Source of the DNA: Prasinococcaceae sp. CCMP 1430
Lineage: Eukaryota > Plantae > Prasinodermophyta
NCBI GenBank assembly: GCA_013416795.1
Contig: RQSC01000014.1
Location: 372,962 to 398,771 of the forward strand
Length of the DNA stretch: 25,810 nt
Direction of reading: 5' to 3'
The notes beneath the pieces are model-generated. The model was not told the DNA's origin. It did no database searches and saw only the letters and a list, made by a program, of their open reading frames with translations. Positions 3,104 to 25,810 of the stretch are shown in pieces. A program made the translations under genes and the position numbers. Within the stretch, counting starts at the first letter, position 1, and each line of letters begins with the position of its first letter.

Positions 3104-4988
3104 TTATTGCCATTTCTTCTGTGCCGCCGCTGATGACCCAGTGCAGTCATCATCGTCGGCATCACAACGAAGCTGCGCGAGCGTACCGCAGGCGAGCGCC
3201 ACCAGCACGTGAGCAGCGCTGTACGCCGAGCCTAGTGCGTCGTGCAGATACGGCAGTGCAGGCGGCGGGGCAACGAAGATGGCCAGAGCGTGTAACACTG
3301 CTACGCCGAGCAGAGACACGACGACGACCGGCCACATGAGGCAGGAGAAGTCCGTCAGGCGTGAACTCCGGACCCCACTGCCCTCGCCACCCTTCCATGC
3401 TCTGGTCTTGCTTTTGTCGTCGTCGACGCCCTGAATGCCCGCAGTCTCGGCGTGCCCCTTCGCACTCGCATCGCTGTGGTCCAGCGCACCGTAGAGCACC
3501 GCGTGCAGCAGCAGCAGCGCGGCGTACGCCACCGCCTGGCCGTCCTTGTGTAGCAGCGGCCACATCGAAAAAGCACCGATGGCCTGCGCCCAGCCAGCCA
3601 GGACCGGGTGCTCACCAGCCAAGAGAGTGAGTGGCAGCAGCGGCAAGAGGATAGACTTCTCGTGCACCTGTACGCGCGCGGCGCGCGTACGAGCCACGCG
3701 CGGGTGTCAGGCGGGCCGCCGCGCTTTGTGCGCGCCAACACGCGCACGCGCGTGCCGTCGAATATACGCCTGCCGGCGCTTGTGGCGCACCTGGAAAGAG
3801 AACAGGAAGAAGGCAAGCGAGCAGTTCATCAGGCACAGCAGGAAACCTCGGCGGCTAGGGCGCACCACCTGGTGGCATACCGCCGGCGCCATGGCTACGA
3901 GCGTCGCGAGCAGGCACAACACCGGCATGAGCTGTGGTGGCACCAAGCGCTTCCACTTGATGGCCAGGCTCGAGGCGCACCAGAAATTCGCCACGTAGTC
4001 CTCAAAGAGGCCGCGTGAGAAGGGAAATAACCTTCTGACGACCTGGGTCGCGGCGTCGGCAGAGCCCAACCATGGCGCCCACAAGAGAACAAAGACGCCA
4101 ATGACGGTCGCTCCAAGTCGGCACACCTGAGCAGCGACGCGCGCCGCGCCGGCGGCGCCGCTGCACTGGCCCTGCGGATGCGCCTTGCGTCAGCCTTGGG
4201 CTCTCACTCAGTTTGCTCCCTCGCTCTCGAACGCTCCAACACGCACAAGGGCAAGAGCGCTGGTTGCTCGTACGCACCTTCCCCCGTCGCAGCGCTTTGC
4301 CGAGCATGTATGCAAAAAAGGCCGGCGCGTAGTAGAGCGCCATCTGCTTGTGGTTAAGCGCCAGGGCAAACGCGACCGCGCCTGCGATGTCAGCACCTCT
4401 CATAGCGAGAGCTGCGCCTGCAATGCTCAGGCCCAGGCTCACGCCGTTGTACTGAAAGTGCCCGTGGTCGATGAGCAGCAGGCAAGGCTGCAGAGCGAGC
4501 GCGGCGAACGCGCGCAGGGCACGCTTCTCGCCTCGACCATCGCCTGGCTTCCTCCCGCCTTGGCGCGAGTAGTACGCCATCGCAGCAGCGTAACACGCAG
4601 GAAGGTAGCACATCACATCGCCAAGGATGACGCTCAAGCGCATGGCCGCCTTGCTCGCCTCCGACTCGAAGCCGCGGCTCCGCTTGCCGAGCGCGAGCGC
4701 CTCCGGCCCTGCGAGCGCCGCGACGAGCCCCCCGCACGCGCGCGAGTGGTACGCCGTCAGTGGCGGGTAATCGAGGCCCCAGTACTGCAGGTCGTTGTGC
4801 TCGCCCTGCTCGTACCACTCGCGCGCCGGCAGGTGCAGCGTGAGCTCCATCCAGTGGCGCTGCGCTTCGTAGTCGCCGTACATCGGCGGCGTGGATTCGC
4901 CCGAGTGTGGCCCGAGCCCGACGGCGGCGCGCGCCACAAGCGCAGCCACCGCCACGCACGGCGCGCCGAGCGCGCCGAGCGCGTCCAT
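3104..4988 (-). CDS. ALG6: Dolichyl-pyrophosphate Man9GlcNAc2 alpha-1,3-glucosyltransferase, exons 4988..4278, 4171..3791, 3667..3104
   Basis: ALG6 signatures YGDYEAQRHWMELT, NDLQYWGLDYPPLTAYHS, LIDHGHFQYN, LNHKQMALYY, RLFPFSRGLFEDYVANFWC, FSFQ|VHEKSILLP. Two phase-0 GT-AG introns (4277-4172, 3790-3668). Ends in KKWQ*, a dilysine ER-retrieval motif. Upstream in-frame starts (5090, 5114) are possible. Confidence 0.95.
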
Positions 4989-8256: not shown

Positions 8257-8499
8257 ATGGCGTTCCCCGGGGACGGCGCGCCGCATGGCACGGCGCCGTT
8301 CTACTCGTGGGCGCTTGCGTTCTTGCGCGACTTCCTCGCGGCGCACGGCTGGTCCATCGTGTTCGGCACGGTCGCGCTCGCGCTCGCGCTGCCGCCGCTG
8401 TGCGCCCGGCTGGGCGCCGTACGTGAGCGTCTCGAGGAGAGCGCAGACCCTGGCAGGCGGGATCGCCTCAACAACGGCGCGGCCGCCGCGCGCGCGCGT
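8257..8499 (+). CDS. Selenoprotein S (VIMP)-like membrane protein, N-terminal ~80 aa only
   Basis: FLAAHGWSIVFGTVALALALPPLCARLGAVRERLEESADPGRRDRLNNGAAAARAR resembles the SELENOS segment LATYGW-IVF-TM-ARLRALRQR...DP...ALAAAR (recalled from memory, not searched). GC3-rich codons. The coiled coil and Sec-containing C-terminus are absent. Confidence 0.55.
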
Positions 8500-9386
8500 C
8501 CGGGCAGCACAGGCCTGCCCAGCGCTTGCCGGCGGCGCAGCTTGGCGTTCTCGCGAGCACCGCCGCTGCCGAAAGCCACAGCGCTCGCGGCCGCTGCGTC
8601 CGAAGGGTCGCGCGCCAGCTGCGAGGTGTGTGTTGGGGTGGGGGGCGGGGATGGGTGTCAGCGCGGCGCGAGGATAGACACAGCCTCGGCGGCGACCGCA
8701 CGAGCGCGCGCGCCGAGTGCGCCGCGCACGCACCAGCGGCACGCCGACGCCCATCTGCCTCCCCTCCGACTCGAGCGCCTTCTCGGCCTTGCGCCGCGCG
8801 CGCATGTCCCTGCGGAGCGCGGCGTTGCTGGCGTAGTCGTCGCCAAAAGGCACCGCCGCCGAGTACAACTGCGCGCGTGCCGAATTGGGCGGGCGCCCCG
8901 TGCTGGTCAGCACCCGTGCGAGAGGGAAAGAGAGGCAGGGAGGGAGGGAGGCAGGCAGGGAGGGAGGGAGGGAGGGAGCCGCGGAGCACCACGCACCTCA
9001 TCCATCCTTTTGGTCGCCGCCTTGGCGATGCGCTCATCCTCCTGGGCGCGCTCCAGGGTGGCCATGGCGTCGCCCCCGGTCGTCCGCTCCCCTTCTCGCC
9101 TCCCTTGGCGCAGCTGGGCGCGCTCGCGCTCGGCGCGCTCGGCGGCCCTCTCGTCCGTCCCCGCCCAGTAGTCGCCCTCCTCGGCGCGCACCGGCGCGTT
9201 GCGCCGCGTGTGCCGGAAGCGCCCGCCGGAGACGAAGACGAAGCCCGCGCTCTGCGGGTCGGTGCGCACCACGAAGGTGGCCCCGCAGCAGGTCGCTTTC
9301 ATGGTGAACTGCCAAATGGGCGAGGAGAGGTACGCGCCCGCCCGCTCCTTGCGCGCGTTGAAGCGCACGCCGCGCCCGAGCGCCTC
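8490..9386 (-). CDS. CCDC130: CCDC130/YJU2B splicing factor, lacking its N-terminus; exons 9386..8997, 8868..8734, 8618..~8490
   Basis: LGRGVRFNARKERAGAYLSSPIWQFTMKATCC...VRTDPQSAGFVFVSG, GDAMATLE, DDYASNAALRRDMR, VPL|LARDPSDAAAASAVAF match the CCDC130 (CWC16 family) motif order. Two phase-0 GT-AG introns (8996-8869, 8733-8619). Confidence 0.85.
8934..8978 (+). repeat. (GGGA/GGCA)n tetranucleotide repeat in CCDC130 intron; potential G-quadruplex
   Basis: Five GGG runs with 1-nt loops at 8958-8976. Confidence 0.8.
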
Positions 9387-10636: not shown

Positions 10637-13600
10637 ATGTCCGCGGCCGCCGTGTCCGCCGTGCAGTCGATCGAGTACCACCACGCGTGCACGCTGGGCC
10701 GCCTGCCCCAGCAGCTCGACGCCGCGTCGGTGTACGCCGCGACTGCGCTCTCCGTGCGCGACGCGCTCGCGAGGCGCATGCTGGCCACCGAGCGTCGCGT
10801 CCGCGCGCAGCGGCCAAAGCGCCTGTGCTACTTGAGCGCCGAGTACCTGCCCGGGCGCGCGCTGCGCAACGCCGCGCAGTGCATGCGCCTCGAGGACGGC
10901 TACGCGCGCGCGGTGGCCGCCTTCGGGCTGAGCCTCGAGGAGGTGTGTGAGGAGGAGCGCGACCCGAGGCTGGGCACGGGCGGCCTCGGGCGCCTCGCGA
11001 GCTGCTTTCTGGACGCCCTGGCGACGCACGACTACCCGGCCGTGGGCTACGGCCTGCGCTACGCGTACGGTCAGTTCCGCCAGGCATTCACGGCGAGCGG
11101 CGAGCAGTGCGAGGCGGCCGACTGCTGGCTCGAGGGGCCGGGGCCCGCCGTCGTGCGCGTCGATGCGGCCGCGAATGGCGCCGCCAACGGCTCGGCCGAC
11201 GGCGCCGAAAGCGGCGCCGTCGGGGCCGCGAAAGGAAGCGGAGCGGGTGCCGCGAGCGCCGTCGAGGGTACGCACGGCAAGCACGGTGAGGGGGGCGAAC
11301 ACGCCGTGGTGCGGCGGCCGCCCCACCGCCCAGACCGCGCCGCTCGCGGGCCCGACAGGCCTCCCGCGCCGCGGATCGCTGGGGGTCGTGGGCAGCCGCG
11401 GCAGCGGCAGCGATGAGCACGTCCACCCCCGGCCCGCGCCGCTGCACCCGTGGGAATTCCGCCGCGACGACGTGGCGTACGTCGTGCGCTTCGGCGGCGA
11501 GGCGCGGCCGCGCGCGGACGGGAGCGGGGGCTACGAGTGGGTGGGCGGCGAGCGCGTGCTCGCGCGCGCGCACGACACGGTGGTGCCGGGCTACGCCACC
11601 ACCACCACGTCGCTCATGCGGCTCTGGTCCGCGGAGCCCGTGCGCGAGCTGGACTTTGCCGCATTCAGCGTCGGGGACTTCGAGGCGGCGATGGGCGACG
11701 CGCTGCGCGCGCGCTCGCTGACGGCGGTCGTGTACCCGGACGACTCGACGGACAGGGGGCGGAGGTTGCGCCTTCGCCAGCAGTACTTCTTCGTCAGCGC
11801 GTCGCTGCAGGACGCCGTCGGACGCTTCAAGGAGGAGGAGGAGGAGGCGCGGGGCGGCGCGGTGGGGCGGCGCGCGGGTTTGGACGGCGGTGCCGGCGCG
11901 CGCGGCGGCAGGGGCGGCGCCACGAGGGCGCGCGCCGCCGCCGAGGCGCTCTTCGCCGCCTTCCCCCAGCGCGTGGCCGTGCAGCTGAACGACACGCACC
12001 CGACCATCGCCATCCCCGAGCTGCTGCGCATCCTGCTGGACGAGGAGGGGCTCGGCTGGGACGCCGCGTGGGCGACGGTGTGCCGCACCTTCGGCTTCAC
12101 CAACCACACGGTGCTGCCCGAGGCGCTCGAGCGCTGGGCGGTGCCCACGCTGCAGGCGCTGCTCCCGCGGCACATGCAGCTCATCTACGAGATCAACCAC
12201 CGCTTCCTGGAGCTCGTGGCGGCCGTGTACCCCGGCGACACGGACAAGCTGTCGCGCATGTCCATCATCGAGGAGAGCGAGCCCAAGGCGGTGCGCATGG
12301 CCGTGCTCGCGCTGGTGGGCTCGCACACGGTCAACGGGGTGGCCAAGGTGCACTCCAACCTGGTGCGCTCCCGGCTCTTCCCGGACTTCGCCGAGCTGTG
12401 GCCGGAGCAGTTCACCAACGTCACCAACGGCATCACGCCGCGCCGGTGGCTGCTGGGGGCCAACCCCGAGCTGTCCGCCGTCATCACGCGGTGGCTCGGC
12501 ACGGACGCGTGGACCAAGGACCTGCGGCTCCTGAGGCGGCTGGAGGAGCACGCCTCCGACCCCGACCTGCACCAGCTGTGGGCGCGCGCCAAGCGGCGGG
12601 CCAAGGGGCGGCTCTGCGCCACCATCGGCAGGATCACCGAAGGGCGCCTGCAGGTGGAGGACGACTGCCTGTTCGACGTGCAGTGCAAGCGCATCCACGA
12701 GTACAAGCGCCAGCTGCTCAACGTGCTGGGCATCGCGCACCGCTGGCTCGCCATCCGCGCGTGCTCGCCCGCGGAGCGCTCCGCGCTCGTGCCGCGCGTG
12801 TGCGTGCTGGCGGGCAAGGCCGCGCGCGGCTACAGGCGGGCCAAGGACGTGCTGGCGCTCGCCAACGCCGTGGCCAACGTGGTGAACAACGACCCCGCCG
12901 TGCGGGGCCTGCTGACGGTGGCGGTGCTGCCGGACTACGGCGTGTCGCTCGCCGAGGCCATCGTCCCCGCCTCGGACATCAGCCAGCACATCTCGACGGC
13001 GGGCACGGAGGCGAGCGGCACGAGCAACATGAAGTTCGCGCTGAACGGGGGCCTGCTGCTGGGCACGCGGGACGGGGCGAACGTCGAGATCGCCGAGGCC
13101 GTGGGGGCCGATCAGATCTTCCTGTTCGGGCCGAAGGTGCGTTTCTTTTTTTTTTTTGGTGTGTGTGTGTGTGTGGAGGGGAGCGAGTTGCGCCGCGTGC
13201 CGCGTTTTCTGCGCGATGTCGCTGCCTCTGACACCGCCATGGCGACGCGCGCGCGTGCTCGCTCGCTCGCCCTGGCTCTCGCAACGACTTGCGCGACGAC
13301 TTGCGCAACGACTTGCAGGTGGGCGAGGTGGACGCCGCGCGCTCGGCGACCAAGGCGCGCAGCTCGGACGAGCGGCTGGACGCCGTCCTCCACCTGCTGC
13401 GCAGCGGGGCGTTCGGCAGGTACGAGCGCTTCAAGGCCCTCGTGGAGAGCTTCGAGGGCGCCAAGGACTACTACTTGGTGGGCCACGACTTCGGGGCGTA
13501 CCTGGACGCGATGCGCGCGGCCGACGTGCTGTACGCCAATCCGCGCGAGTGGACGCGGCGCTCGATCCTGTGCACGGCGCGCATGGGGCGGTTCTCGGCG

Positions 13601-13669
13601 GACAGGAGCGTCGAGAAGTACGTGCGGGAGATATGGGGGCTCGGCAAGCTCGCGCGCAATGGGGAGTGA
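10637..13669 (+). CDS. PHO: Alpha-1,4-glucan (starch/glycogen) phosphorylase, GT35; exons 10637..11285 (or ..11267), 11359..13136, 13319..13669; frame open back to the N at 10495
   Basis: YLSAEYLPGR, LGTGGLGRLASCFLD, RLRQQYFFVSASLQD, QLNDTHP, TNHTVLPEALE, TNGITPRRW, KRIHEYKRQLLN, PLP-lysine motif EASGTSNMKFALNG, RFSADRSVEKY. The frame change is explained by a phase-1 intron ending CCCGACAG|GC (11358). Phase-0 intron 13137-13318. Confidence 0.95.
13146..13174 (+). repeat. T12 + (GT)n microsatellite in phosphorylase last intron
   Basis: Seen directly. Confidence 0.8.
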
Positions 13670-13845
13670 ACGAACGTACAGCGACGGGGGCGGAGGACGC
13701 GCTGTGTCGCAGATGGCCCTCCAGAGGCGACGCTCGCGGCGGAGGCGCGCTCGGAGGCGCGCGTCAAGCCAGGCCGGGGGCGGCCTGTCTCTCCTGTTCG
13801 GTGTTGCGAGCGGAGGGAGCGGGTGGGGCGGGAGAGGGGGGGAGG

Positions 13846-16800
13846 AATGGGGACGCTGTGGTACACCTCGCTGTTCGCGTTCTGACGGACGTACGAAAAC
13901 ACTCAAAGCACTTTAACGATTTGTCGTATGCGGCCGCCCCTGCCGCGGGCACTGCGCGTGCGTGTCTCTGCGCGTCGCGCACGCGTAAGAGGGGTGCAAC
14001 TGGCGCACTACTGAGCTATCCGATTTATTTCAGGGTTCAGGGCTCGGGGCCGCGGTGTCGCCAGCAGCCCCCTCATCGACTTTTCCTTCATCCTCCTCGC
14101 CCTCGCCTGCCTTTTGGCTCGCGCTCCTCGCCACGCGCGCGCTCCTGAGCTTGGACAGCTTGGCGCGCGCCGCGCGCCGCACCGCCGCGCCGTGCGTGAG
14201 CACCGCCGACAGCACGGGCATCGCGAACACTATGCCCGAGGTGATAACCAACAGGGCGCCGATCACCAGCCGGTCGTTCGTGCCGCCGACGGTCTCTACC
14301 TTGACCAGCAGGCCGGCGAAGAGGATGAGCGCGATCTCGACGAGCGCCGCCTGTGCGGAGCGGTCCACCGCGGCGTCCGCGAACGGGCTGAGCGCCAGGT
14401 TGGCCACGAGAAAGAAGCAGGCGACGAGAAGCCCGACGGCAATCTGGCCGCTCCCGCCGGCGTCGACGAAGACCAGCGCGCCGGTCAGCACCAGCTTGCG
14501 CAGCAGCTCCACCAGCTCCCAATACCAGCACTCGGTGTGGTAGGAGGCGAAGAGCTGGCCGCAGTGGCGAATCGCGAGCGCCTCGTCCGAGTCGAGCGGC
14601 CCCGTGGTGCCGTCGGCGGGGCGGTCCTCCTCCGAGCCGCCAACTGGCCCGTCGGCCGACTCGGCCGCAGCGCCCCTCGCGCTGGCGCTCGACTTGGCGC
14701 CGAAGCAGAGCTCGCCGACCGGAGCGTGCGCAGCCGCCCACGCGACCAGCGCCTCGCGCGCCGTGCCGTCGTCGTCGGCGAAGGAGGCCGCTCGCGATGC
14801 CTTCCCCGACCGTGGCGACGTGGGGCCGTCCTCGCCCAGCTCGGCGGTCTTGGACTGCGGCGACGCGGGGGTGTCGCCGCCGGGTTGCTCGGCATCCTTC
14901 GACGCGTCGCCGGCGAGCGTTTGCGCGAGCTTCGTCCCGACGCGCACCTCGCCCTCGAAGAGCTGCTCGAGGGTGGCGCGCTCGCGCAGCAGGCGGCGCA
15001 TCTCCATGCCGAGCACGGCGTCCACCTCATCGGCGTCCTCGTTGAGCGCGATGCCCACCAGGAGGGCGTTGCGCGCCACGGCGCGGCTGTGGTGCCGGGC
15101 GGCGATGGCGCGCACGCCGTGGTGAAGCATGATCAGCCAGAAGAAGAGCGGGATGCCCACGACGTAGAGCGCAATGCCGATGGACGCAATCACCCGCGCT
15201 TCGTCGTGCGCGGCGGTGTCGCATCGCAGGCGCAGGTCGCTCGAGAGCCAGCGCACGCCGTCCACCTCGCGGCAGTGAAACGTCCTCAGCAGCGTGGCCG
15301 ACAGAATGGGGTAGACCAAGAAGAGGGCGAACAGCGAGTTGCGCCACACGTTGGCGCGGAAGCGCGCCAGGCGAGGGCGGCGGGCCTCGTCGCCCCTGGC
15401 GTAGAGGCGACCAACCACGAACAGCAGGAGCGTCACGACGCCAAAGGCCGCCGGAGCGCAACACCACAGCCGCAGCTTGTCGAAGAAGTTCCACCTTTCC
15501 AGAGAGCAGCGTACGCTGGGCAGCGCCAGCACGTCCAGGTTGATCACCTTGAGCGCCTTTACCATGTCAAGGAACGACCTCGGCCAGCGAATGTCAAAGG
15601 TGACATCCACCGTCGCGACGACCTGCACGAAGGCGATCAGCACGCGCGCGTGCGCCGCGAAGCTGCTGCGCTCGAGGCGACTCTCGACAGACTCTGCGGT
15701 CTCCGCGACGCCCTTGGCGACGGCTTCGGACGCCTTGCGACTCAGCGTCCGACCCAGCTGCGTCGTTTTTGTCAACAACAGAAACCGCTTACGACGTCTC
15801 GTTGATCGCTACGGAAAGTTGGCACGCTCTTGTGAGAACTACGCAAAGTCCTGCGGCGGGTGGTCCCGTAGCTCCGCGCCGAGGAATGGCAGCCAGTAGA
15901 GCAGCACCACGACGAGCGCGAGCGCGAGCGCTCCAGCCATCGCGCCGACCCACACGCTTCCACTCGCCTGGCACGACGAGCAGCCATCGCCCTCCGAGTA
16001 GCCATACCCCCCGAGCGTGTGGCGCGTGTCGTACGGCAGCATCGGCATCAGCGTCGCGGTGCTGCAGTCGGTCGCGTCCTCGAGGCCGGCCTCCAGCAGC
16101 GCGCGGCGGCTCCCACTAGCGCGAGCTCCATCCCCTCCACCTCCGTGCCCGCGCGGCGCGTGCTCGGGGAGGCACGCGGTGGGAAAGGGGCACGAGTAGA
16201 ACACGGGCGAGCAGTACAAAAGCGCGGTCATCGGGCGGTACGGCGAGCCGCGCGGCGGGCTCGACGTTAACCGCGGGCAGCCTGTGCTGCTCGTTCTGTG
16301 GTCGCCTCCTCCCGCGGTCCGTTCGGGATAGCTGCCGGGCAGGCACGCGCAATCGTCGACCGACGTGCTCCCCACCGCTCTCGTGGTTGCGCCGACGGGG
16401 CACGATGTGCAGCTGGTTGCGGCGGCGCCATCGGAGAACTTGCCCTGCTCGCACACGGCGCTAATGGGGACGCTGTGGTACACCTCGCTGTTCGCGTTCT
16501 GACGGACGTACGAAAACGAAAACACTCAAAGCACTTTAACGATTTTTCGTATGCAGCCGCCGCTGCCACGGGCGCTGCGCGTGCGCGTCTCTGCGCGTCG
16601 CGCACACGTAAAAGGGGTGCAACTGGCGCACTGCTGAGCTATCCGATTTCAAAGTCCCAAGTCCCGAGCCCCGGCGCCACAGCGGTCGTCGGGGGAGTAG
16701 CTGAATTCCTTCATCCTCCTCGCCCTCGCCTGCCTTTTGGCTCGCGCTCCTCGCCACGCGCGCGCTCCTGAGCTTGGACAGCTTGGCGCGCGCCGCGCGC

Positions 16801-19146
16801 CGCGCCGCCGCGCCGTGCTCGAGCACCGCCGACAGCACGGGAATTGGCTTGTGGTACGGGCTCCACTGGTGGTCGTCCCGCGGCTAGTGGGCGGCCAGCA
16901 AGCACGGCGGCTGCCAGAGTACCTTGACCAGCAGGCCGGCGAAGAGGATGAGCGCGATCTCGACGAGCGCCGTTCTACCTTGACCAGCAGGCCGGCGAAG
17001 AGGATGAGCGCGATCTCGACGAGCGCCGTCTGTGCGGAGAAGTCAACCGCATTGTCCGCGTGTGGGCTGAATGCAACGTTAGCCACGAGGAAGACGCAGG
17101 CGACGAGAAGCCCGACGGCGACCTGGCCGCTCCCGCCGGCGTCGACGAAGACCAGCGCGCCGGTGAGCACAAACTTGCGAATCATCTCCACCAGCTCCCA
17201 GTACCAGCATCGGGTGTGGTAGGAGGCGAAGAGCTGGCCGCAGTGGCGAATCGCAAGCGCCTCGTCCGCATCGAGCGGACCCGCGGTGCCGTCGGCGAGG
17301 ATGTCCTCCTCCGCGCGGCCAGCCGGCCCTACGGCCGATCCGGCCACACCGCCCCTTGCGCTGGCGCTCGAGTTGGCGCCGAAGCAGAGCTCGCCGATCG
17401 GGGCGTGCGCAGCCGCCCACGCGACGAGCGCCTCGTGCGCCGCGCCGTCGTCGTCGGCGAAGGAGGCTGCTCGCGATGCCTTCCCCGACCCTGGCGACGC
17501 TGGGCCGTCCTCGCCCTGCTCGGCGGCCTTGGACTCCGGCGACGCAGAGGTGTCACCGCCGGGCCGCTGGGCATTCTTCGTCTCGTCGCCGACGAGCGTT
17601 TGCGCGAGCCTCGTCCCGACGCGCACCTCGCCCTCGAACAGCTGCTCGAGGGTGGCGCGCTCGCGCAGCAGGCGGCGCATCTCCATGCCGAGCACGGCGT
17701 CCACCTCGTCTGCGTCCTCGTTGAGCGCGATGCCTACCAGAAGGGCGTTGCGCGCCACGGCGCGGCTGTGGTGCCGGGCGGCGATGGCGCGCACGCCGTG
17801 GTGAAGCATGATCAGCCAGAAGAAGAGCGGGATGCCCACGACGTAGAGCGCAATGCCGATGGACGCAATCACCCGCGCTTCGTCGTGCGCGGCGGTGTCG
17901 CATCGCAGGCGCAGGTCGCTCGAGAGCCAGCGCACGCCGTCCACCTCGCGGCAGTGAAACGTCCTCAGCAGCGTGGCCGACAGAATGGGGTAGACCAAGA
18001 AGAGGGCGAACAGCGAGTTGCGCCACACGTTGGCGCGGAAGCGCGCCAGGCGAGGGCGGCGGGCCTCGTCGCCCCTGGCGTAGAGGCGACCAACCACGAA
18101 CAGCAGGAGCGTCGCGACGCCGTTCCGGCGGCCTCGCGTTGTGGTGTCGGCGTCGAACAGCTTCTTCAAGGTGGAAACCAGAGAGCAGCGTACGCTGGGC
18201 AGCGCCAGCACGTCCAGGTTGATCACCTTGAGCGCCTTTACCATGTCAAGGAACGACCTCGGCCAGCGAATGTCAAAGGTGACATCCACCGTCGCGACGA
18301 CCTGCACGAAGGCGATCAGCACTGTCAAAGGTCACATCCACCGTTGCGACGACCTGCACGAAGGCGATCAGCACGCGCGCGTGCGCCGCGGCGCTGCTGC
18401 GCTCGAGGCGACGCTCGACAGACTCAGCAGTCGCCGCGACGGCCTCGGAGGCCTTGCGGCCCTGCTGCGCCTTCTTTGTGTGGTCGACTTTGGTGCACGC
18501 AACAAAGCGCTTCGCGACGCGTTCCAGAACGCCGCCCACCCGGGCGTCGAGGCTCGGCAGGAATGGCAGCCAGTAGAGCAGCACCACGACGAGCGCGAGC
18601 GCGAGAAATGCAGCCACCGCGCCGACCCACACGCTTCCACTCGCCTGGCACGACGTGCAGCCATCGCCCTCCGAGTAGCCATACCCAGGCTCGCACACCG
18701 CGCACAGCATGCCGTCGTAGCCGTAGTCGCAGCGCCACGACGAGTCGGCCGCGTCCTCAAGGCCGGCCTCCAACAGCGCGCGGCGGCTCCCACTCGAGCT
18801 TGGAGCGCGAGCGCCATCCCCGCCACCCCCGTGCCCGCGCGGCGCGTGCTCGGGGAGGCACGCGGTGGGAAAGGGGCACGAATAGAACACGGGCGCGCTC
18901 ATGTTTTCGCGCCAGTAGCCCGCCATGCCGCTCGGTGCCCCGCCCGAGCTGCAGTTGCCGCCCGTCGGGCACGACGAGCAAGACACCTCGTCTTCTCCCG
19001 CGGTCCGTTCGGGATAGCTGCCGGGCAAGCACTGGCAATTGTCGACCGACGTGCTCCCCACCGTTCTCGTGGTTGCGCCGACGGGGCACGACGTGCAGCT
19101 GGTTGCGGCGGCGCCATCGGAGAACTTGCCCTGCTCGCACACGGCG
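13846..19146. repeat. Head-to-tail tandem segmental duplication, unit A 13846..16460, unit B 16463..19146 (3' half of receptor gene plus 3' flank)
   Basis: Both units start AATGGGGACGCTGTGGTACACC and end GCTCGCACACGGCG. They are colinear with alternating identical and diverged blocks, roughly 90% identical by eye. Confidence 0.92.
14030..16460 (-). CDS. Receptor copy A: last Cys-rich repeats plus ~9-TM membrane domain, 5'-truncated
   Basis: Intact 582-codon ORF 14030..15778 (VLIAFVQV, FLVYPILS...FHC, YWELVELLRKLVLTG). Upstream 15779-16460 is colinear with copy B and becomes one open frame with the ORF once three in-place complemented segments are complemented back. Confidence 0.75.
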
Positions 19147-21689
19147 CAGCTAAGCCCGTCGACCTCAGTGCCGGCGGGACATGCGCACACCGTCGAGCCG
19201 CTTACCACGAGAGCCGTCATCAGCGGGTCGCTGCACGCGCATGCCGACGCCGCGGTGGAGCCAGCGGGGCTGTTCGCGCCCGCGGGGCAGTCGGTGCACG
19301 ACACCGCGCCGTCGCCGTCGCTGAAGGTGTTGGCGGGGCAAGGCTCGCACTCGGGGTTGATGCCGCTGGGGCCGTACGTGCCGGCCGCGCAGTCGGTGCA
19401 CGCGCTCGCGCCGGCCACGCTGGTGCGCCCGCTGCCGCACGCCGCGCAGTCGCCCGCGGAGGTGCTGCCGGCGCCGGCGACGAAGGTACCTGCGGGGCAC
19501 TCGGTGCACTGCGCCGCGCCCACGGCATCCGCGTACGTGCCTGCGCCGCAGGGCGAGCAGGCGGTCGCGTCGGTGGCGTTGGTCGCCGAGCCCTTGGCGC
19601 ACTGCGCGCACGCGGCGCCCCACGTCTGCGTCGCCGAGGCGCCATCGAGGCGATACCAGCCGCCGCCCTGCAGCGCGCCGCACGCGTAGCACTGCTCGCC
19701 CGCCTGGGGCGTGAAGGCGTTGGCGGGGCAGTCGTCGCAGGACGTTTGGCCCGTCGAGGCGGTGGTCGTGCCGATGGCGCACGTGTCGCAGGTGGAATGG
19801 CCAGCCGAGGGCTGGTAAAGGCCCTTGGCGCACGGCTCGCACGTCGACGAGGCGGTGGCGCCTATCAGGGCAGAAGAGGTGCCGGCGGGGCACTCCTTGC
19901 AGCCCTCGCCCGCGGCGTCGGCGTAGGTCCCGGCGGGGCAGTCAGAGCACGCTTTTGAGCCAATGTCTGAGCCTTGGCCCGCCGGGCAGGCGAGGCAGTC
20001 CGCCGAGGTTGCGGAGAACGTGGCGGCGTTGTATGTGTTGGCGCCGCACGGTTCGCACTGCCTCGCGTCGCCGCCGTACGAGGCCACGTACATGCCGGGC
20101 GGGCACGCGTAGCAGGAGGAGGTGTCGATCGTGCCGGCCGCGCATATCGAAAGCTGGACGGCGAGGGCGTCTACAGAGCCACCGACGTACGAGCCGAGCG
20201 CGCTCCACGCCGCGCCGTCCCACTTGGCGATGTAGGACGTGCCCGACACGCCGCCGGCCGAGTAGAAGCCGCCGCCGACGTACAGCGAGCCCGACGAGGC
20301 GTCCCACGCGAGGGCGCGTACATAGCCGGCACCGACGCCCGAGCCGAGCGCGCTCCACGCCGCGCCGTCCCACTTGGCGATGTAGGAGAAGCCGCCCACG
20401 TACAGCGAGCCCGACGAGGCGTCCCACGCGAGGGCGCGGACAGTGTCTTCCCACGCGACGGCGCGGACAGTGTCATCGACGCCCGAGCCGAGCGCGCTCC
20501 ACGCCGCGCCGTTCCACTTGGCGATCTCTGACGTGCCCGACACGCCGCCGGCCGAGTCGAAGGAGCCGCCGACGTACAGCGAGCCCGACGACGCGTCCCA
20601 CGCGAGGGCGCGTACCAGATCGCCATAGACGCCCGAGCCGAGCGCGCTCCACGCCGCGCCGTCCCACTTGGCGATATTGGACCTGCCCGACACGCCGCCG
20701 GCCGAGCCGAAGTCGCCGCCGACGTACAGCGAGCCCGACGAAGCGTCCCACGCGAGGGCATAAACACTGTAACCATCGACGCCCGAGCCGAGCGCGCTCC
20801 ACGCCGCGCCGTCCCACTTGGCGATCCCTGACGTGCCCGACACGCCGCCGGCCGAGTCGAAGGAGCCGCCGACGTACACCGAGCCCGACGAAGCGTCCCA
20901 CGCGAGGGCGTTAACTGTGCTATCGACGCCCGAGCCGAGGGCGCTCCACGCCGCGCCGTCCCACTTGGCGATGCCGGACGTGCCCGACACGCCGCCGGCC
21001 GAGTCGAAGTCGCCGCCGACGTACAGCGAGCCCGACGATGCGTCCCACGCGAGGGCGTACACATAAGCACCATTGACGCCCGCGCCGAACGCCGCCGTCC
21101 ACGCGTCCCCTTCATGCAGCATCGCGCCTTCGTATCCACCAACCGCGAGCCGTGAGCCGCTCGAGACCGTTCGCACGTTCGCGTTAGCGGAGAGAACAAC
21201 CTCCGCGTCCATGCCATCGTCGGCAAAGCCCATCTCGCCGGCGTACGCGCCGGCCGCGCCGAGGCCCGAGCCGAGCGTCAGCGCAATGGACACCGACGCG
21301 CCGCCTGAGAGCGTTCCCAGGGCGGGCGAGGCCGACAGCCACGCGTCCGAGGGCGCAGCCGCCCACTCCATCGCGCTGGCCGCATCGTTGGTGAGCGTGA
21401 CCGTCGCGGTCGTGGTTGTGCTATACGCCATCGTCTCGGACACGCTCACGGGCGACACGATGAGGGGCGGCGACACGGTGAGCTGCAGCGGCAGCCGGAT
21501 GGCGTCGCCGCCGCTCGAGCCCACCACCAGCACTGCCGAGTGCGCGCCCTGCGCCAGCCCCGACGCGTTCATCCGCACCGTCACGCTGGCGCTGGCGCCA
21601 GCCGCGAGGCCGCTTCCAGCGTTGGCGCCCACCACGCTCGCCCACGCCTCGCTGACGGTGGCGAACCAGTCGAGAGTGGCCGAGCCATC
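16653..21689 (-). CDS. Receptor copy B: ~1,600-aa surface protein, 2 BACON-like domains + beta-propeller + GCC2/GCC3 (ephrin-receptor-like) Cys repeats + ~9 TM helices
   Basis: ORF 18273..21635 extends in frame to acceptor CACCTCGTAG|GAT at 21690. ORF 16649..18328 supplies the TM part. The breaks correspond to two short tandem duplications and three complemented segments. First exon and signal peptide not located. Confidence 0.85.
20160..21100 (-). repeat. Six ~147-150 bp coding tandem repeats (ALAWDASSGSLYVGGxFxSAGGVSGTSxIAKWDGAAWSALGSGV), beta-propeller blades
   Basis: Six near-identical units read directly in ORF 18273..21635. Unit 5 is shortened and carries a 27-nt internal duplication (20422-20475). 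Confidence 0.95.
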
Positions 21690-22184: not shown

Positions 22185-22455
22185 GTGCGGGCGCCCCCGC
22201 GCGCGCGAAAATCGGGCGCGTTCGAAAAAAAGCGGCGGGGCGACGACTCCGATTCGAAGGCGCCCCGCTTTTCGCGTGGGTTTTGACCTCAGCGCTCGCG
22301 GAGCGGTGACGTGCCGCCAGGGCCGGGTGTGGATTCGGATGTGAGGCCGGGACCCGCCCCCGGAGGGCTCGGTGTGCGTTGTGAAAACCCAGAGATTGAT
22401 CCGAGACCCGCCCGCCCTCGGTCCCTTTCGGAAACCCCGAACAGGCGGGTTTATT

Positions 22456-22746
22456 CTGGCAGGGAGCTCTGCCGACCTGGCAGGGAGAGCTGAAACATGG
22501 CAGGGAGGCCTTTAAACACGGCAGGGAGAAGGTTTTCGTCAGATAAATTTTTTGAGGCGCCAGGGTTCAGCGGACGTGACGGCGGCGACCCACAGTGGCC
22601 GTCGGCGGCCGGGAGTCCTATATCAAAATGCACCTACCTCCCAGAAACCCTGATTACATCAAAATGCAACTTACAATGCGTGCATGGCTTTTGCAGCTCC
22701 CTGCCAGCGGCATGTCTCCCGTTTTTATTGTGAGAAACGGGAGACA
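22456..22746. mobile_element. Candidate DNA-transposon terminal/subterminal region (phased GGCAGGGAG motifs, inverted copy, hairpin)
   Basis: Four GGCAGGGAG at 22458, 22479, 22499, 22520. 13-bp inverted pair CTGGCAGGGAGCT (22456-22468) / AGCTCCCTGCCAG (22695-22707). 12-bp-stem hairpin at 22713-22746. No transposase or TSD seen. Confidence 0.3.
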
Positions 22747-23203
22747 CTCCCTTGGAAAACTCACGGTTTGATATACAAATGCATGCAATATGTAGAATGC
22801 AATTTGATGTGAAAGTGGCGGAGCTGAGCAGCCAGCGAGAGCTCCTGTGCACGCATTTGATCGTACGCGCGCAAATTCTTCGCCGGCCAGGCGGGGGCAG
22901 CCTAACAGCCATCACAGGCAGGGGGGCGCCATCGCTGCTGCCTGCGGTGGCACAAGGCGCGCGCGGCGCGCGGCGCCGCCGGCGCGCGCCTGCGGGGCGG
23001 GCGGCACCGCTCGTGCGACCGTCGGCGCAGTGGGGGGAGGGGTGCTCGCTGCGCTGGCCGTCTCCGCCCATCCCTTGCCAGTGTGGCGCGCGGCCGGCAG
23101 GGTGGCTGGCCTGTTCAGTCTTTGCGGCGGGGCCTGCTGTTGCAAGGCCGCCACAGGCGCCCCTCATTTTGCCCTTGCGTCAGGCGCCGTGGCGCCGGGC
23201 GCG

Positions 23204-23619
23204 ATGGCCGCTCTGCTTCGACACGAGAGCGCCCGAGAGCATAGTACGCGCGCCGCGCGGGCCCTCGTGTTCCTGCCGCTAGGCTTCGTGCTGTGGACGG
23301 CGCTTACGCTATGGGCCGCCTTCGTTCGCAACTCAATGTCACTCAACCAAAGCGATGGCGGCATGACCACCCACGCCGGCCGCATCGACATCACTGCGGA
23401 GGCTGCTACGTCCGCGACCACTCGCGGCGGCGGCAACAGTAGCAGGGCACGGCACCTGCGAGATGAGGCGGGCCTGCACCGCGCGCGTTCGCAAAGGGAG
23501 GCCGAGCTCGGTCCAGGGACGCTGCGAGCGCTGGTGAACGGCCTCACGGTGGTGCGAATGGCCGAGAGGCAGCAGCTGTGGCAGAGACCCCCGCGCGATG
23601 ACAGTGATTCGACCAATGC
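23204..23619 (+). CDS. Hypothetical type II membrane protein, 5' part, runs into gap
   Basis: MAALLRHESAREHSTRAARALVFLPLGFVLWTALTLWAAFVRNS...: short basic tail, one hydrophobic segment, then a polar stem. Codon bias is weaker than in host genes. Confidence 0.4.
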
Positions 23620-24135
23620 NNNNNNNNNNNNNNNNNNNNNNNNNNNNNNNNNNNNNNNNNNNNNNNNNNNNNNNNNNNNNNNNNNNNNNNNNNNNNNNNN
23701 NNNNNNNNNNNNNNNNNNNNNNNNNNNNNNNNNNNNNNNNNNNNNNNNNNNNNNNNNNNNNNNNNNNNNNNNNNNNNNNNNNNNNNNNNNNNNNNNNNNN
23801 NNNNNNNNNNNNNNNNNNNNNNNNNNNNNNNNNNNNNNNNNNNNNNNNNNNNNNNNNNNNNNNNNNNNNNNNNNNNNNNNNNNNNNNNNNNNNNNNNNNN
23901 NNNNNNNNNNNNNNNNNNNNNNNNNNNNNNNNNNNNNNNNNNNNNNNNNNNNNNNNNNNNNNNNNNNNNNNNNNNNNNNNNNNNNNNNNNNNNNNNNNNN
24001 NNNNNNNNNNNNNNNNNNNNNNNNNNNNNNNNNNNNNNNNNNNNNNNNNNNNNNNNNNNNNNNNNNNNNNNNNNNNNNNNNNNNNNNNNNNNNNNNNNNN
24101 NNNNNNNNNNNNNNNNNNNNNNNNNNNNNNNNNNN
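23620..24135. other. Assembly gap (516 N)
   Basis: Seen directly. Confidence 0.99.
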
Positions 24136-24319
24136 GGCGGGGATCTCGGCTGCATGGCACACCGGCGCCGCGACGAGCGTCGCCTGCTCGGGCGCGTGCC
24201 GTCGCGCGGCGCGCCACGGCGGCGCTGGTGGCGCCTGCCATCGTGATGGTGCAGTTGTAACCGCGCATTTTGCGATCGGAAAATATCTTTCGTGTCGAGG
24301 ACTGTACTAAAATGACGTA

Positions 24320-24536
24320 AGGCCGTTTCTTAGGCCGTTTCTTATTATAGGGATCTGCAGGTAGGTTAAATGCATGCAAAAAGTGCAGGCAGCCGGCGCG
24401 GGATTGGGATCTGGGGGGCGGCATTTAGGCCGTTGCTTAATAGCATCCATAAATTTTGTACGTAAATTCTGGCGTCGGCAGAGGATTTATGTACAAAATT
24501 TATGGACGGGGGGGCTTGCTTAATAGCTTCCATAAA
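24320..24536. repeat. AT-rich structured block: 12-bp direct repeats, 25-bp-arm inverted repeat, 21-bp direct repeat
   Basis: AGGCCGTTTCTT x2 (24320-24343) plus a variant at 24427. Arms 24446-24470 / 24482-24506. TTGCTTAATAGC(A/T)TCCATAAA at 24433 and 24516. Confidence 0.8.
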
Positions 24537-24637
24537 CTTAAATTTTTACATGCATTTTTATATGCATTTTTTATGTCGGTGCCCTTCATTTTTGGGGTTT
24601 GGGGTCACGGACCCGGAAGCCGACATTTCGGTTTCAA

Positions 24638-25810
24638 GGGTTTATTCTGGCAGGGAGCTCTGCCGACCTGGCAGGGAGAGCTGAAACATGGCAGGGAGGC
24701 CTTTAAACACGGCAGGGAGAAGGTTTTCGTCAGATAAATTTTTTGAGGCGCCAGGGTTCAGCGGACGTGACGGCGGCGACCCACAGTGGCCGTCGGCGGC
24801 CGGGAGTCCTATATCAAAATGCACCTACCTCCCAGAAACCCTGATTACATCAAAATGCAACTTACAATGCGTGCATGGCTTTTGCAGCTCCCTGCCAGCG
24901 GCATGTCTCCCGTTTTTATTGTGAGAAACGGGAGACACTCCCTTGGAAAACTCACGGTTTGATATACAAATGCATGCAATATGTAGAATGCAATTTGATG
25001 TGAAAGTGGCGGAGCTGAGCAGCCAGCGAGAGCTCCTGTGCACGCATTTGATCGTACGCGCGCAAATTCTTCGCCGGCCAGGCGGGGGCAGCCTAACAGC
25101 CATCACAGGCAGGGGGGCGCCATCGCTGCTGCCTGCGGTGGCACAAGGCGCGCGCGGCGCGCGGCGCCGCCGGCGCGCGCCTGCGGGGCGGGCGGCACCG
25201 CTCGTGCGACCGTCGGCGCAGTGGGGGGAGGGGTGCTCGCTGCGCTGGCCGTCTCCGCCCATCCCTTGCCAGTGTGGCGCGCGGCCGGCAGGGTGGCTGG
25301 CCTGTTCAGTCTTTGCGGCGGGGCCTGCTGTTGCAAGGCCGCCACAGGCGCCCCTCATTTTGCCCTTGCGTCAGGCGCCGTGGCGCCGGGCGCGATGGCC
25401 GCTCTGCTTCGACACGAGAGCGCCCGAGAGCATAGTACGCGCGCCGCGCGGGCCCTCGTGTTCCTGCCGCTAGGCTTCGTGCTGTGGACGGCGCTTACGC
25501 TATGGGCCGCCTTCGTTCGCAACTCAATGTCACTCAACCAAAGCGATGGCGGCATGACCACCCACGCCGGCCGCATCGACATCACTGCGGAGGCTGCTAC
25601 GTCCGCGACCACTCGCGGCGGCGGCAACAGTAGCAGGGCACGGCACCTGCGAGATGAGGCGGGCCTGCACCGCGCGCGTTCGCAAAGGGAGGCCGAGCTC
25701 GGTCCAGGGACGCTGCGAGCGCTGGTGAACGGCCTCACGGTGGTGCGAATGGCCGAGAGGCAGCAGCTGTGGCAGAGACCCCCGCGCGATGACAGTGATT
25801 CGACCAATGC
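24638..25810 (+). repeat. 1,173-bp direct repeat, copy 2
   Basis: Appears identical to 22447..23619 and stops at the same base (GACCAATGC). Confidence 0.93.
25395..25810 (+). CDS. Second identical copy of the hypothetical type II membrane protein 5' part
   Basis: Same sequence as 23204..23619, truncated by window end. Confidence 0.4.
   Translation, partial: MAALLRHESAREHSTRAARALVFLPLGFVLWTALTLWAAFVRNSMSLNQSDGGMTTHAGRIDITAEAATSATTRGGGNSSRARHLRDEAGLHRARSQREAELGPGTLRALVNGLTVVRMAERQQLWQRPPRDDSDSTN

Follow-up and report, generated by a model that had tools for sequence, protein, structure and literature searches.

The stretch of DNA analyzed here (the window) comprises 25,810 nucleotides of contig RQSC01000014.1 from Prasinococcaceae sp. 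CCMP 1430, and it carries a tandem pair of receptor-like genes together with phosphorylase, ALG6/8, kinase and Saf4/Yju2-like genes. The G+C content of the window is ~70%. Because it contains three runs of N, at positions 852-1637 (786 nt), 10495 (1 nt) and 23620-24135 (516 nt), the window appears to be a gapped scaffold. The lengths of the two long runs (786 and 516 nt) are multiples of 3, and the runs may be scaffold gaps or masked sequence. The single-copy phosphorylase and ALG6/8 genes have a normal reading as written, introns aside. For the kinase, a Pfam search of the ORF as written yields one contiguous match.

The two receptor copies are both on the minus strand and align with one another in register:

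13846-16461, minus strand: copy A, the last ~830 codons of a receptor plus 3' flank, delimited by chains of direct repeats.
16463-21635, minus strand: copy B, a full-length receptor gene that as written is broken at codon 1120, recognized by Pfam matches.

The 5' part of copy B is a 1120-codon ORF that includes a BACON-like domain, a Rax2-type beta-propeller and seven Ephrin_rec_like (GCC2/GCC3) Cys-rich modules. In a Pfam search, the 1120-aa ORF matches PF07699 in seven stretches (E = 3.1e-34) and likewise matches PF23091, PF12768 and PF19190. Copy A contains the end of the Cys-rich region, the first transmembrane (TM) segment and a multi-pass C-terminal domain. In the C-terminal part that is common to both copies, the Cys-rich region is followed by one TM segment and then by about eight more hydrophobic segments (~8-9 in all). 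With PF07699 repeated in this way, copies A and B are, by their predicted domain content, members of the Ephrin_rec_like (GCC2/GCC3) receptor-like family.

In the public protein collection, the closest matches to A and B come from Prasinoderma coloniale (PRCOL_* proteins). PRCOL_00003280, PRCOL_00006417, PRCOL_00005509 and PRCOL_00007229 belong to the same paralog family as A and B, with 72-83% identity over the region searched, and PRCOL_00003280 has long stretches that are 100% identical to A and B, which places the origin of the window in P. coloniale or in a strain nearly identical to it. Unlike these relatives, both copies in the window are disrupted as written, which we attribute to the record and not to the gene. 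PRCOL_00003280 is a mosaic when compared with the window: residues 581-1039 and 1252-1339 are A-type, whereas residues 1040-1252 are identical to B, and the N-terminal part that precedes its A-like C-terminal part is a different one. The mosaic means either that paralog variants have been mixed in one of the two assemblies or that there is a third paralog, from which PRCOL_00003280 may then derive instead of from the same locus. The tandem arrangement of A and B may itself be an artefact of the path taken through an assembly graph.

Six blocks within the two copies match the other copy or relatives only when A is exchanged with T and C with G, without reversal. Three of these blocks are in copy A, and three are in copy B. 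The comparisons listed below include L002, an ENA SPAdes metagenome contig (sample ERZ28548065, record chicken_3__NODE_49175) that has ~88% nucleotide identity to A, and the complement-only string, which is the window after this exchange:

15772-15881, minus strand: block A1, 110 nt (2 x 55); in tblastn against the complement-only string, residues 724-759 of PRCOL_00003280 are 100% identical over 15881-15773; complement run against L002 across 15773-15881 (73/80).
16011-16065, minus strand: block A2, exactly 55 nt; 55/55 complement to B 18688-18742 and 55/55 to L002.
16213-16301, minus strand: block A3, 89 nt; complement run against B 18899-18987, with 83-84 complement positions; 83/89 to L002.
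16651-16705, minus strand: block B1, exactly 55 nt; 55/55 complement to A 14028-14082 and 55/55 to L002.
16847-16919, minus strand: block B2, 73 nt; 73/73 complement to L002; complement run against A 14224-14296, with 5 true variants.
18123-18177, minus strand: block B3, exactly 55 nt; 55/55 complement to A 15444-15498; 51/54 to L002.

In this analysis, 12-mers of the window were chained against the window's own complement-only string. Five block pairs (A2, A3, B1, B2 and B3) fall exactly on the diagonals defined by the direct A/B matches on either side, and base-by-base alignments reveal unbroken runs of complement positions within the blocks. To control for chance, the window was subjected to each of the 23 base permutations other than the identity. 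Between-copy chains of at least 22 nt resulted only from the exchange of A with T and C with G (5 pairs). Three other permutations gave a few hits, which are self-matches at the same coordinates within runs of bases that the permutation leaves unchanged. The permutation control thus excludes chance as the source of the blocks. A reverse-complement search of the window detected low-complexity sequence only, with nothing at the block sites, and reverse-only chains of at least 20 nt in the window are limited to four low-complexity self-matches near 8371-8977.

The blocks have clear consequences for the encoded proteins. Block A1 as written specifies a garbled peptide with stops at 15839-15841 and 15809-15811. 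The lower boundary of A1 lies inside a codon that encodes Ser, as in PRCOL_00003280, only if position 15772 is complemented and position 15771 is not. When complemented back, A3 encodes VSCSSCPTGANCSSGGAPSGMAGYWRENM, and the sole difference from PRCOL_00003280 is the first residue (V for M). Block B1 masks the C-terminus and stop of copy B, and block B3, when complemented back, is a 94% match to residues 851-868 of PRCOL_00003280. The original prediction was that three segments of copy A are in-place complements of the paralog. All three are real, and two have the predicted limits (16011-16065 and 16213-16301), but the Ser codon shared with PRCOL_00003280 places the start of the third at 15772 and not at ~15782. 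Both peptides that had been obtained by complementing back were reproduced, and the stop at 15839 is eliminated by complementing the block in A, as had been proposed. However, blocks had been recognized only in copy A, and the three in copy B were missed.

Seven family members were compared by tblastn with the window and with the complement-only string. High-identity matches of the family proteins to the complement-only string coincide exactly with the six blocks and occur nowhere else. Within the blocks of A, PRCOL_00003280 matches only the complemented-back reading and not the reading as written. This match covers 36 A-specific residues, PRLDALVGGVLKRIKSVLARLKGIASCSAAFAKDNN, and because these residues are absent from copy B, the blocks are local sequence that has been complemented, not copies of B. 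L002 matches the window as written outside the six blocks. The un-complemented form is therefore carried at all six blocks by both the PRCOL_00003280 protein and the L002 DNA. A Prasinoderma-like receptor gene in a chicken-labeled assembly is odd for a marine picoalga, and the occurrence of L002 in this sample may reflect contamination or feed.

Complementing the blocks also restores the reading frames. When the three blocks in A are complemented, both internal stops are lost, an 831-codon open frame results, and identity to PRCOL_00003280 rises from 665/790 as written to 737/809. Copy B becomes a single 1624-codon ORF only if its three blocks are complemented and one copy of each of two tandem duplications (see below) is dropped. 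The corrected ORF of B has the same terminus, ...GDTAAPSPEP, as A and PRCOL_00003280. When 5.8 billion proteins were searched with the garbled 228-aa ORF from copy A, no relative was detected, which implies that the product as written has no counterpart in the protein collection, and the search did not return short fragments of the true type either. A metagenome scan that used an S/W-coded pattern, which matches the 16010/16011 junction both as written and complemented back, gave 0 hits, and a protein-based metagenome scan recovered just one relative, with 30% identity.

The block lengths, in the order A1 to A3 and B1 to B3, are 110, 55, 89, 55, 73 and 55 nt. Each 55-nt block occurs directly after an A/B variant, at 16010 for A2 and at 18122 for B3, and each, when complemented back, occupies the start of a maximal exact A/B match, which is 61 nt long for A2, 153 nt for B1 and 200 nt for B3. 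All three 55-nt blocks are thus at boundaries of exact repeats that are at least as long as the characteristic size of 55 nt. The blocks numbered 2 and 6 start 2-3 nt past a variant, not 1 nt. A single fixed size parameter is matched by the three 55-nt blocks and the 110-nt block, whereas the 73- and 89-nt blocks do not correspond to one k-mer. Features of similar size are found at the boundary between the copies and inside copy B:

16407-16517: junction of A and the 3' flank of B, composed of an exact 55-nt repeat (= 19093-19147), a T at 16462 and an exact 55-nt repeat (= 13846-13900).
16918-17029: tandem duplication in copy B, two copies of a 56-nt unit (55-mer plus T), which shifts the frame.
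18271-18374: tandem duplication in copy B, two copies of a 52-nt unit with 2 mismatches, which shifts the frame.

The 56-nt duplication adjoins block B2 and is missing in A and in L002, in which bases 3807-3861 (55 nt) align to both units. In the 52-nt duplication, the first unit is A-type and the second is B-type, and the duplication is missing in A. PRCOL_00003280 aligns without either duplication. Both resemble the result of a failure to merge the overlap of two successive assembly pieces. All eight defects, the six blocks and the two duplications, are located within 15772-18374, where the paralogs have common exact repeats of at least 55 nt.

These observations suggest, with a probability of roughly 0.94, that the blocks are an artefact of assembly or post-assembly software and not a property of the DNA. 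Judged by the sequence comparisons, the complement blocks are not a real biological feature. The original proposal of a software step that mishandles the opposite strand is supported by the normal form of the independent sequences, by the 55-nt quantized lengths at exact-repeat boundaries, by the adjoining duplications that resemble unmerged overlaps, and by the fact that both copies are hit. The near-identical receptor paralogs of this fragmented, N-gapped assembly could have been assembled along paths in a k-mer graph or overlap graph whose characteristic overlap is 55 nt, such that the sequence would be a series of short-read graph pieces connected where they overlap. At some joins, the overlap would have been written as a plain complement, which is the opposite strand reversed without complementing, instead of the reverse complement. 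This overlap would be exactly 55 nt for graph neighbors and longer for other joins. Still other joins might have left the overlap unmerged, and each of these would leave a tandem duplication of about 55 nt. The opening 55 nt of an exact match would, in a de Bruijn graph built with k=55, be the shared k-mer at which the paths of the two paralogs come together, and we infer that the specific step was the mishandling of strands when pieces of such a graph were joined. A single k-mer does not account for the 73-, 89- and 110-nt blocks.

Known artefacts of de Bruijn and overlap joins resemble the defects in the window in several respects. The defects are found at the boundaries of exact repeats shared by paralogs, their size corresponds to one fixed parameter (55 nt), they occur beside duplications of about 55 nt and N gaps, and they are absent from independent sequences. 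However, the usual products of such joins are duplications, collapses, chimeric joins and true inversions, whereas here the overlap is a complement without reversal. A literature search for an assembly bug that complements without reversal found no description of one. The published P. coloniale genome is based on PacBio data processed with NextDenovo, Arrow and NextPolish, and is described as 22 gap-free chromosomes. An origin of the blocks in this pipeline seems unlikely, as it would account neither for the N gaps of the window nor for its signature of a k=55 graph.

The record could instead have been altered after assembly by a file-handling or patching script, by polishing or by gap-closing, with the graph assembler not at fault. 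Such an alteration, which we consider improbable, would be consistent with blocks that are exact and in place. It is also consistent with the normal form of the annotated P. coloniale protein, which implies that at least one block-free version of the genome exists or existed. However, random or coordinate-based editing would not place three 55-nt blocks at the starts of maximal matches directly after variants, and the co-occurrence of blocks with overlap-sized tandem duplications is not expected of it. A post-assembly step would need knowledge of the paralog variants to position the blocks. It is possible that a variant-aware polisher or gap-closer has this knowledge, but this scenario overlaps the explanation by a faulty join.

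A decoding error in color space (SOLiD-type data) is very improbable. In such data, complementation is one of three base relabelings that leave the di-base color string unchanged. A stretch decoded from a wrong-strand anchor base could therefore appear as an in-place complement without reversal, and blocks that are short and exact agree with this. However, all three relabelings would be expected among such errors, and the other two (A<->C with G<->T, and A<->G with C<->T) give 0 chains, compared with 5 complement pairs. Moreover, the published data for the species are PacBio and Illumina, and SOLiD reads do not have a length of 55 nt, so neither platform nor lengths fit. Mis-decoding also does not predict a link between the blocks and the starts of exact repeats.

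It is scarcely credible that the blocks are real genomic DNA, in which short stretches of about 55 nt were copied in parallel, not antiparallel, orientation at paralog boundaries by a process not previously described. This idea draws on nothing beyond the sequence as written, with its garbled ORF present in the record. To our knowledge, no polymerase or repair pathway makes a parallel complement, as is established biochemistry. Six such events would have occurred within 2.4 kb of one gene pair, with 55-nt quantized sizes, exact-repeat boundaries and adjoining duplications of the overlap type, while independent sequences have the normal form. Furthermore, the blocks destroy a frame that is otherwise open, and only ordinary paralog differences remain when they are complemented back.

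Two recognized kinds of DNA rearrangement or symmetry were rejected. A biological inversion likewise replaces a segment in place from the opposite strand with sharp boundaries, but it gives the reverse complement, whereas the blocks in the window pair base i with base i, match in register after complementing only, and are at sites where the reverse-complement search was blank. Mirror repeats (of the H-DNA type) and the 'complement repeats' of repeat typologies are likewise non-canonical symmetry classes of DNA repeats. Mirror repeats have a reverse-only symmetry on one strand and usually consist of purine or pyrimidine tracts. In contrast, the blocks in the window are complex coding sequence related to the paralog by complement only, and the reverse-only matches in the window are restricted to low-complexity sequence.

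Because the complement blocks are almost certainly a software error, the receptor gene only looks broken, and the organism very probably has intact receptor genes. The assembly would then carry a systematic error in which coding stretches of 55-110 nt are scrambled, creating false stops and false pseudogenes. This kind of error is invisible to ordinary alignment tools, and gene models, pseudogene calls and paralog comparisons that are based on the record are likely to be wrong wherever such blocks fall. Blocks could be flagged genome-wide by their signature, which is an in-register, complement-only match with a modal length of 55 nt at the start of an exact repeat. The value of the finding therefore lies in a data-quality warning and a recipe for locating the remaining blocks, and it has no biological significance.

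Elsewhere in the window, codon usage was scanned for complement-only coding potential. The scan recovered just 1-2 of the six known blocks and is thus too insensitive for stretches of 55-110 nt, so it was not used to claim further blocks. The Saf4/Yju2-like domain is encoded at 8990-9380 on the minus strand. Its Pfam match starts at profile position 42, and the usual Cys pairs are missing as written. A complement-only reading that restores these Cys pairs was sought in this gene, and none was found.

An independent metagenome contig (ENA ERZ17099871 NODE_203125) has 99.2% identity to the window across the phosphorylase gene (11311-13822), and diverges completely before 11311 and after 13822. 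The latter divergence point is just ahead of 13846, where the repeated unit begins. At 22447-25810, a sequence is repeated in tandem every 2191 nt, and the G+C content of this region is about 43-45%, versus 70% elsewhere. Rfam searches of the region gave no matches, and its 177-aa ORF has no Pfam match. The bases of the repeat at 22447-23619 and 24638-25810 are identical, and the 516-nt run of N begins exactly at the point where the end of the window cuts the second copy.
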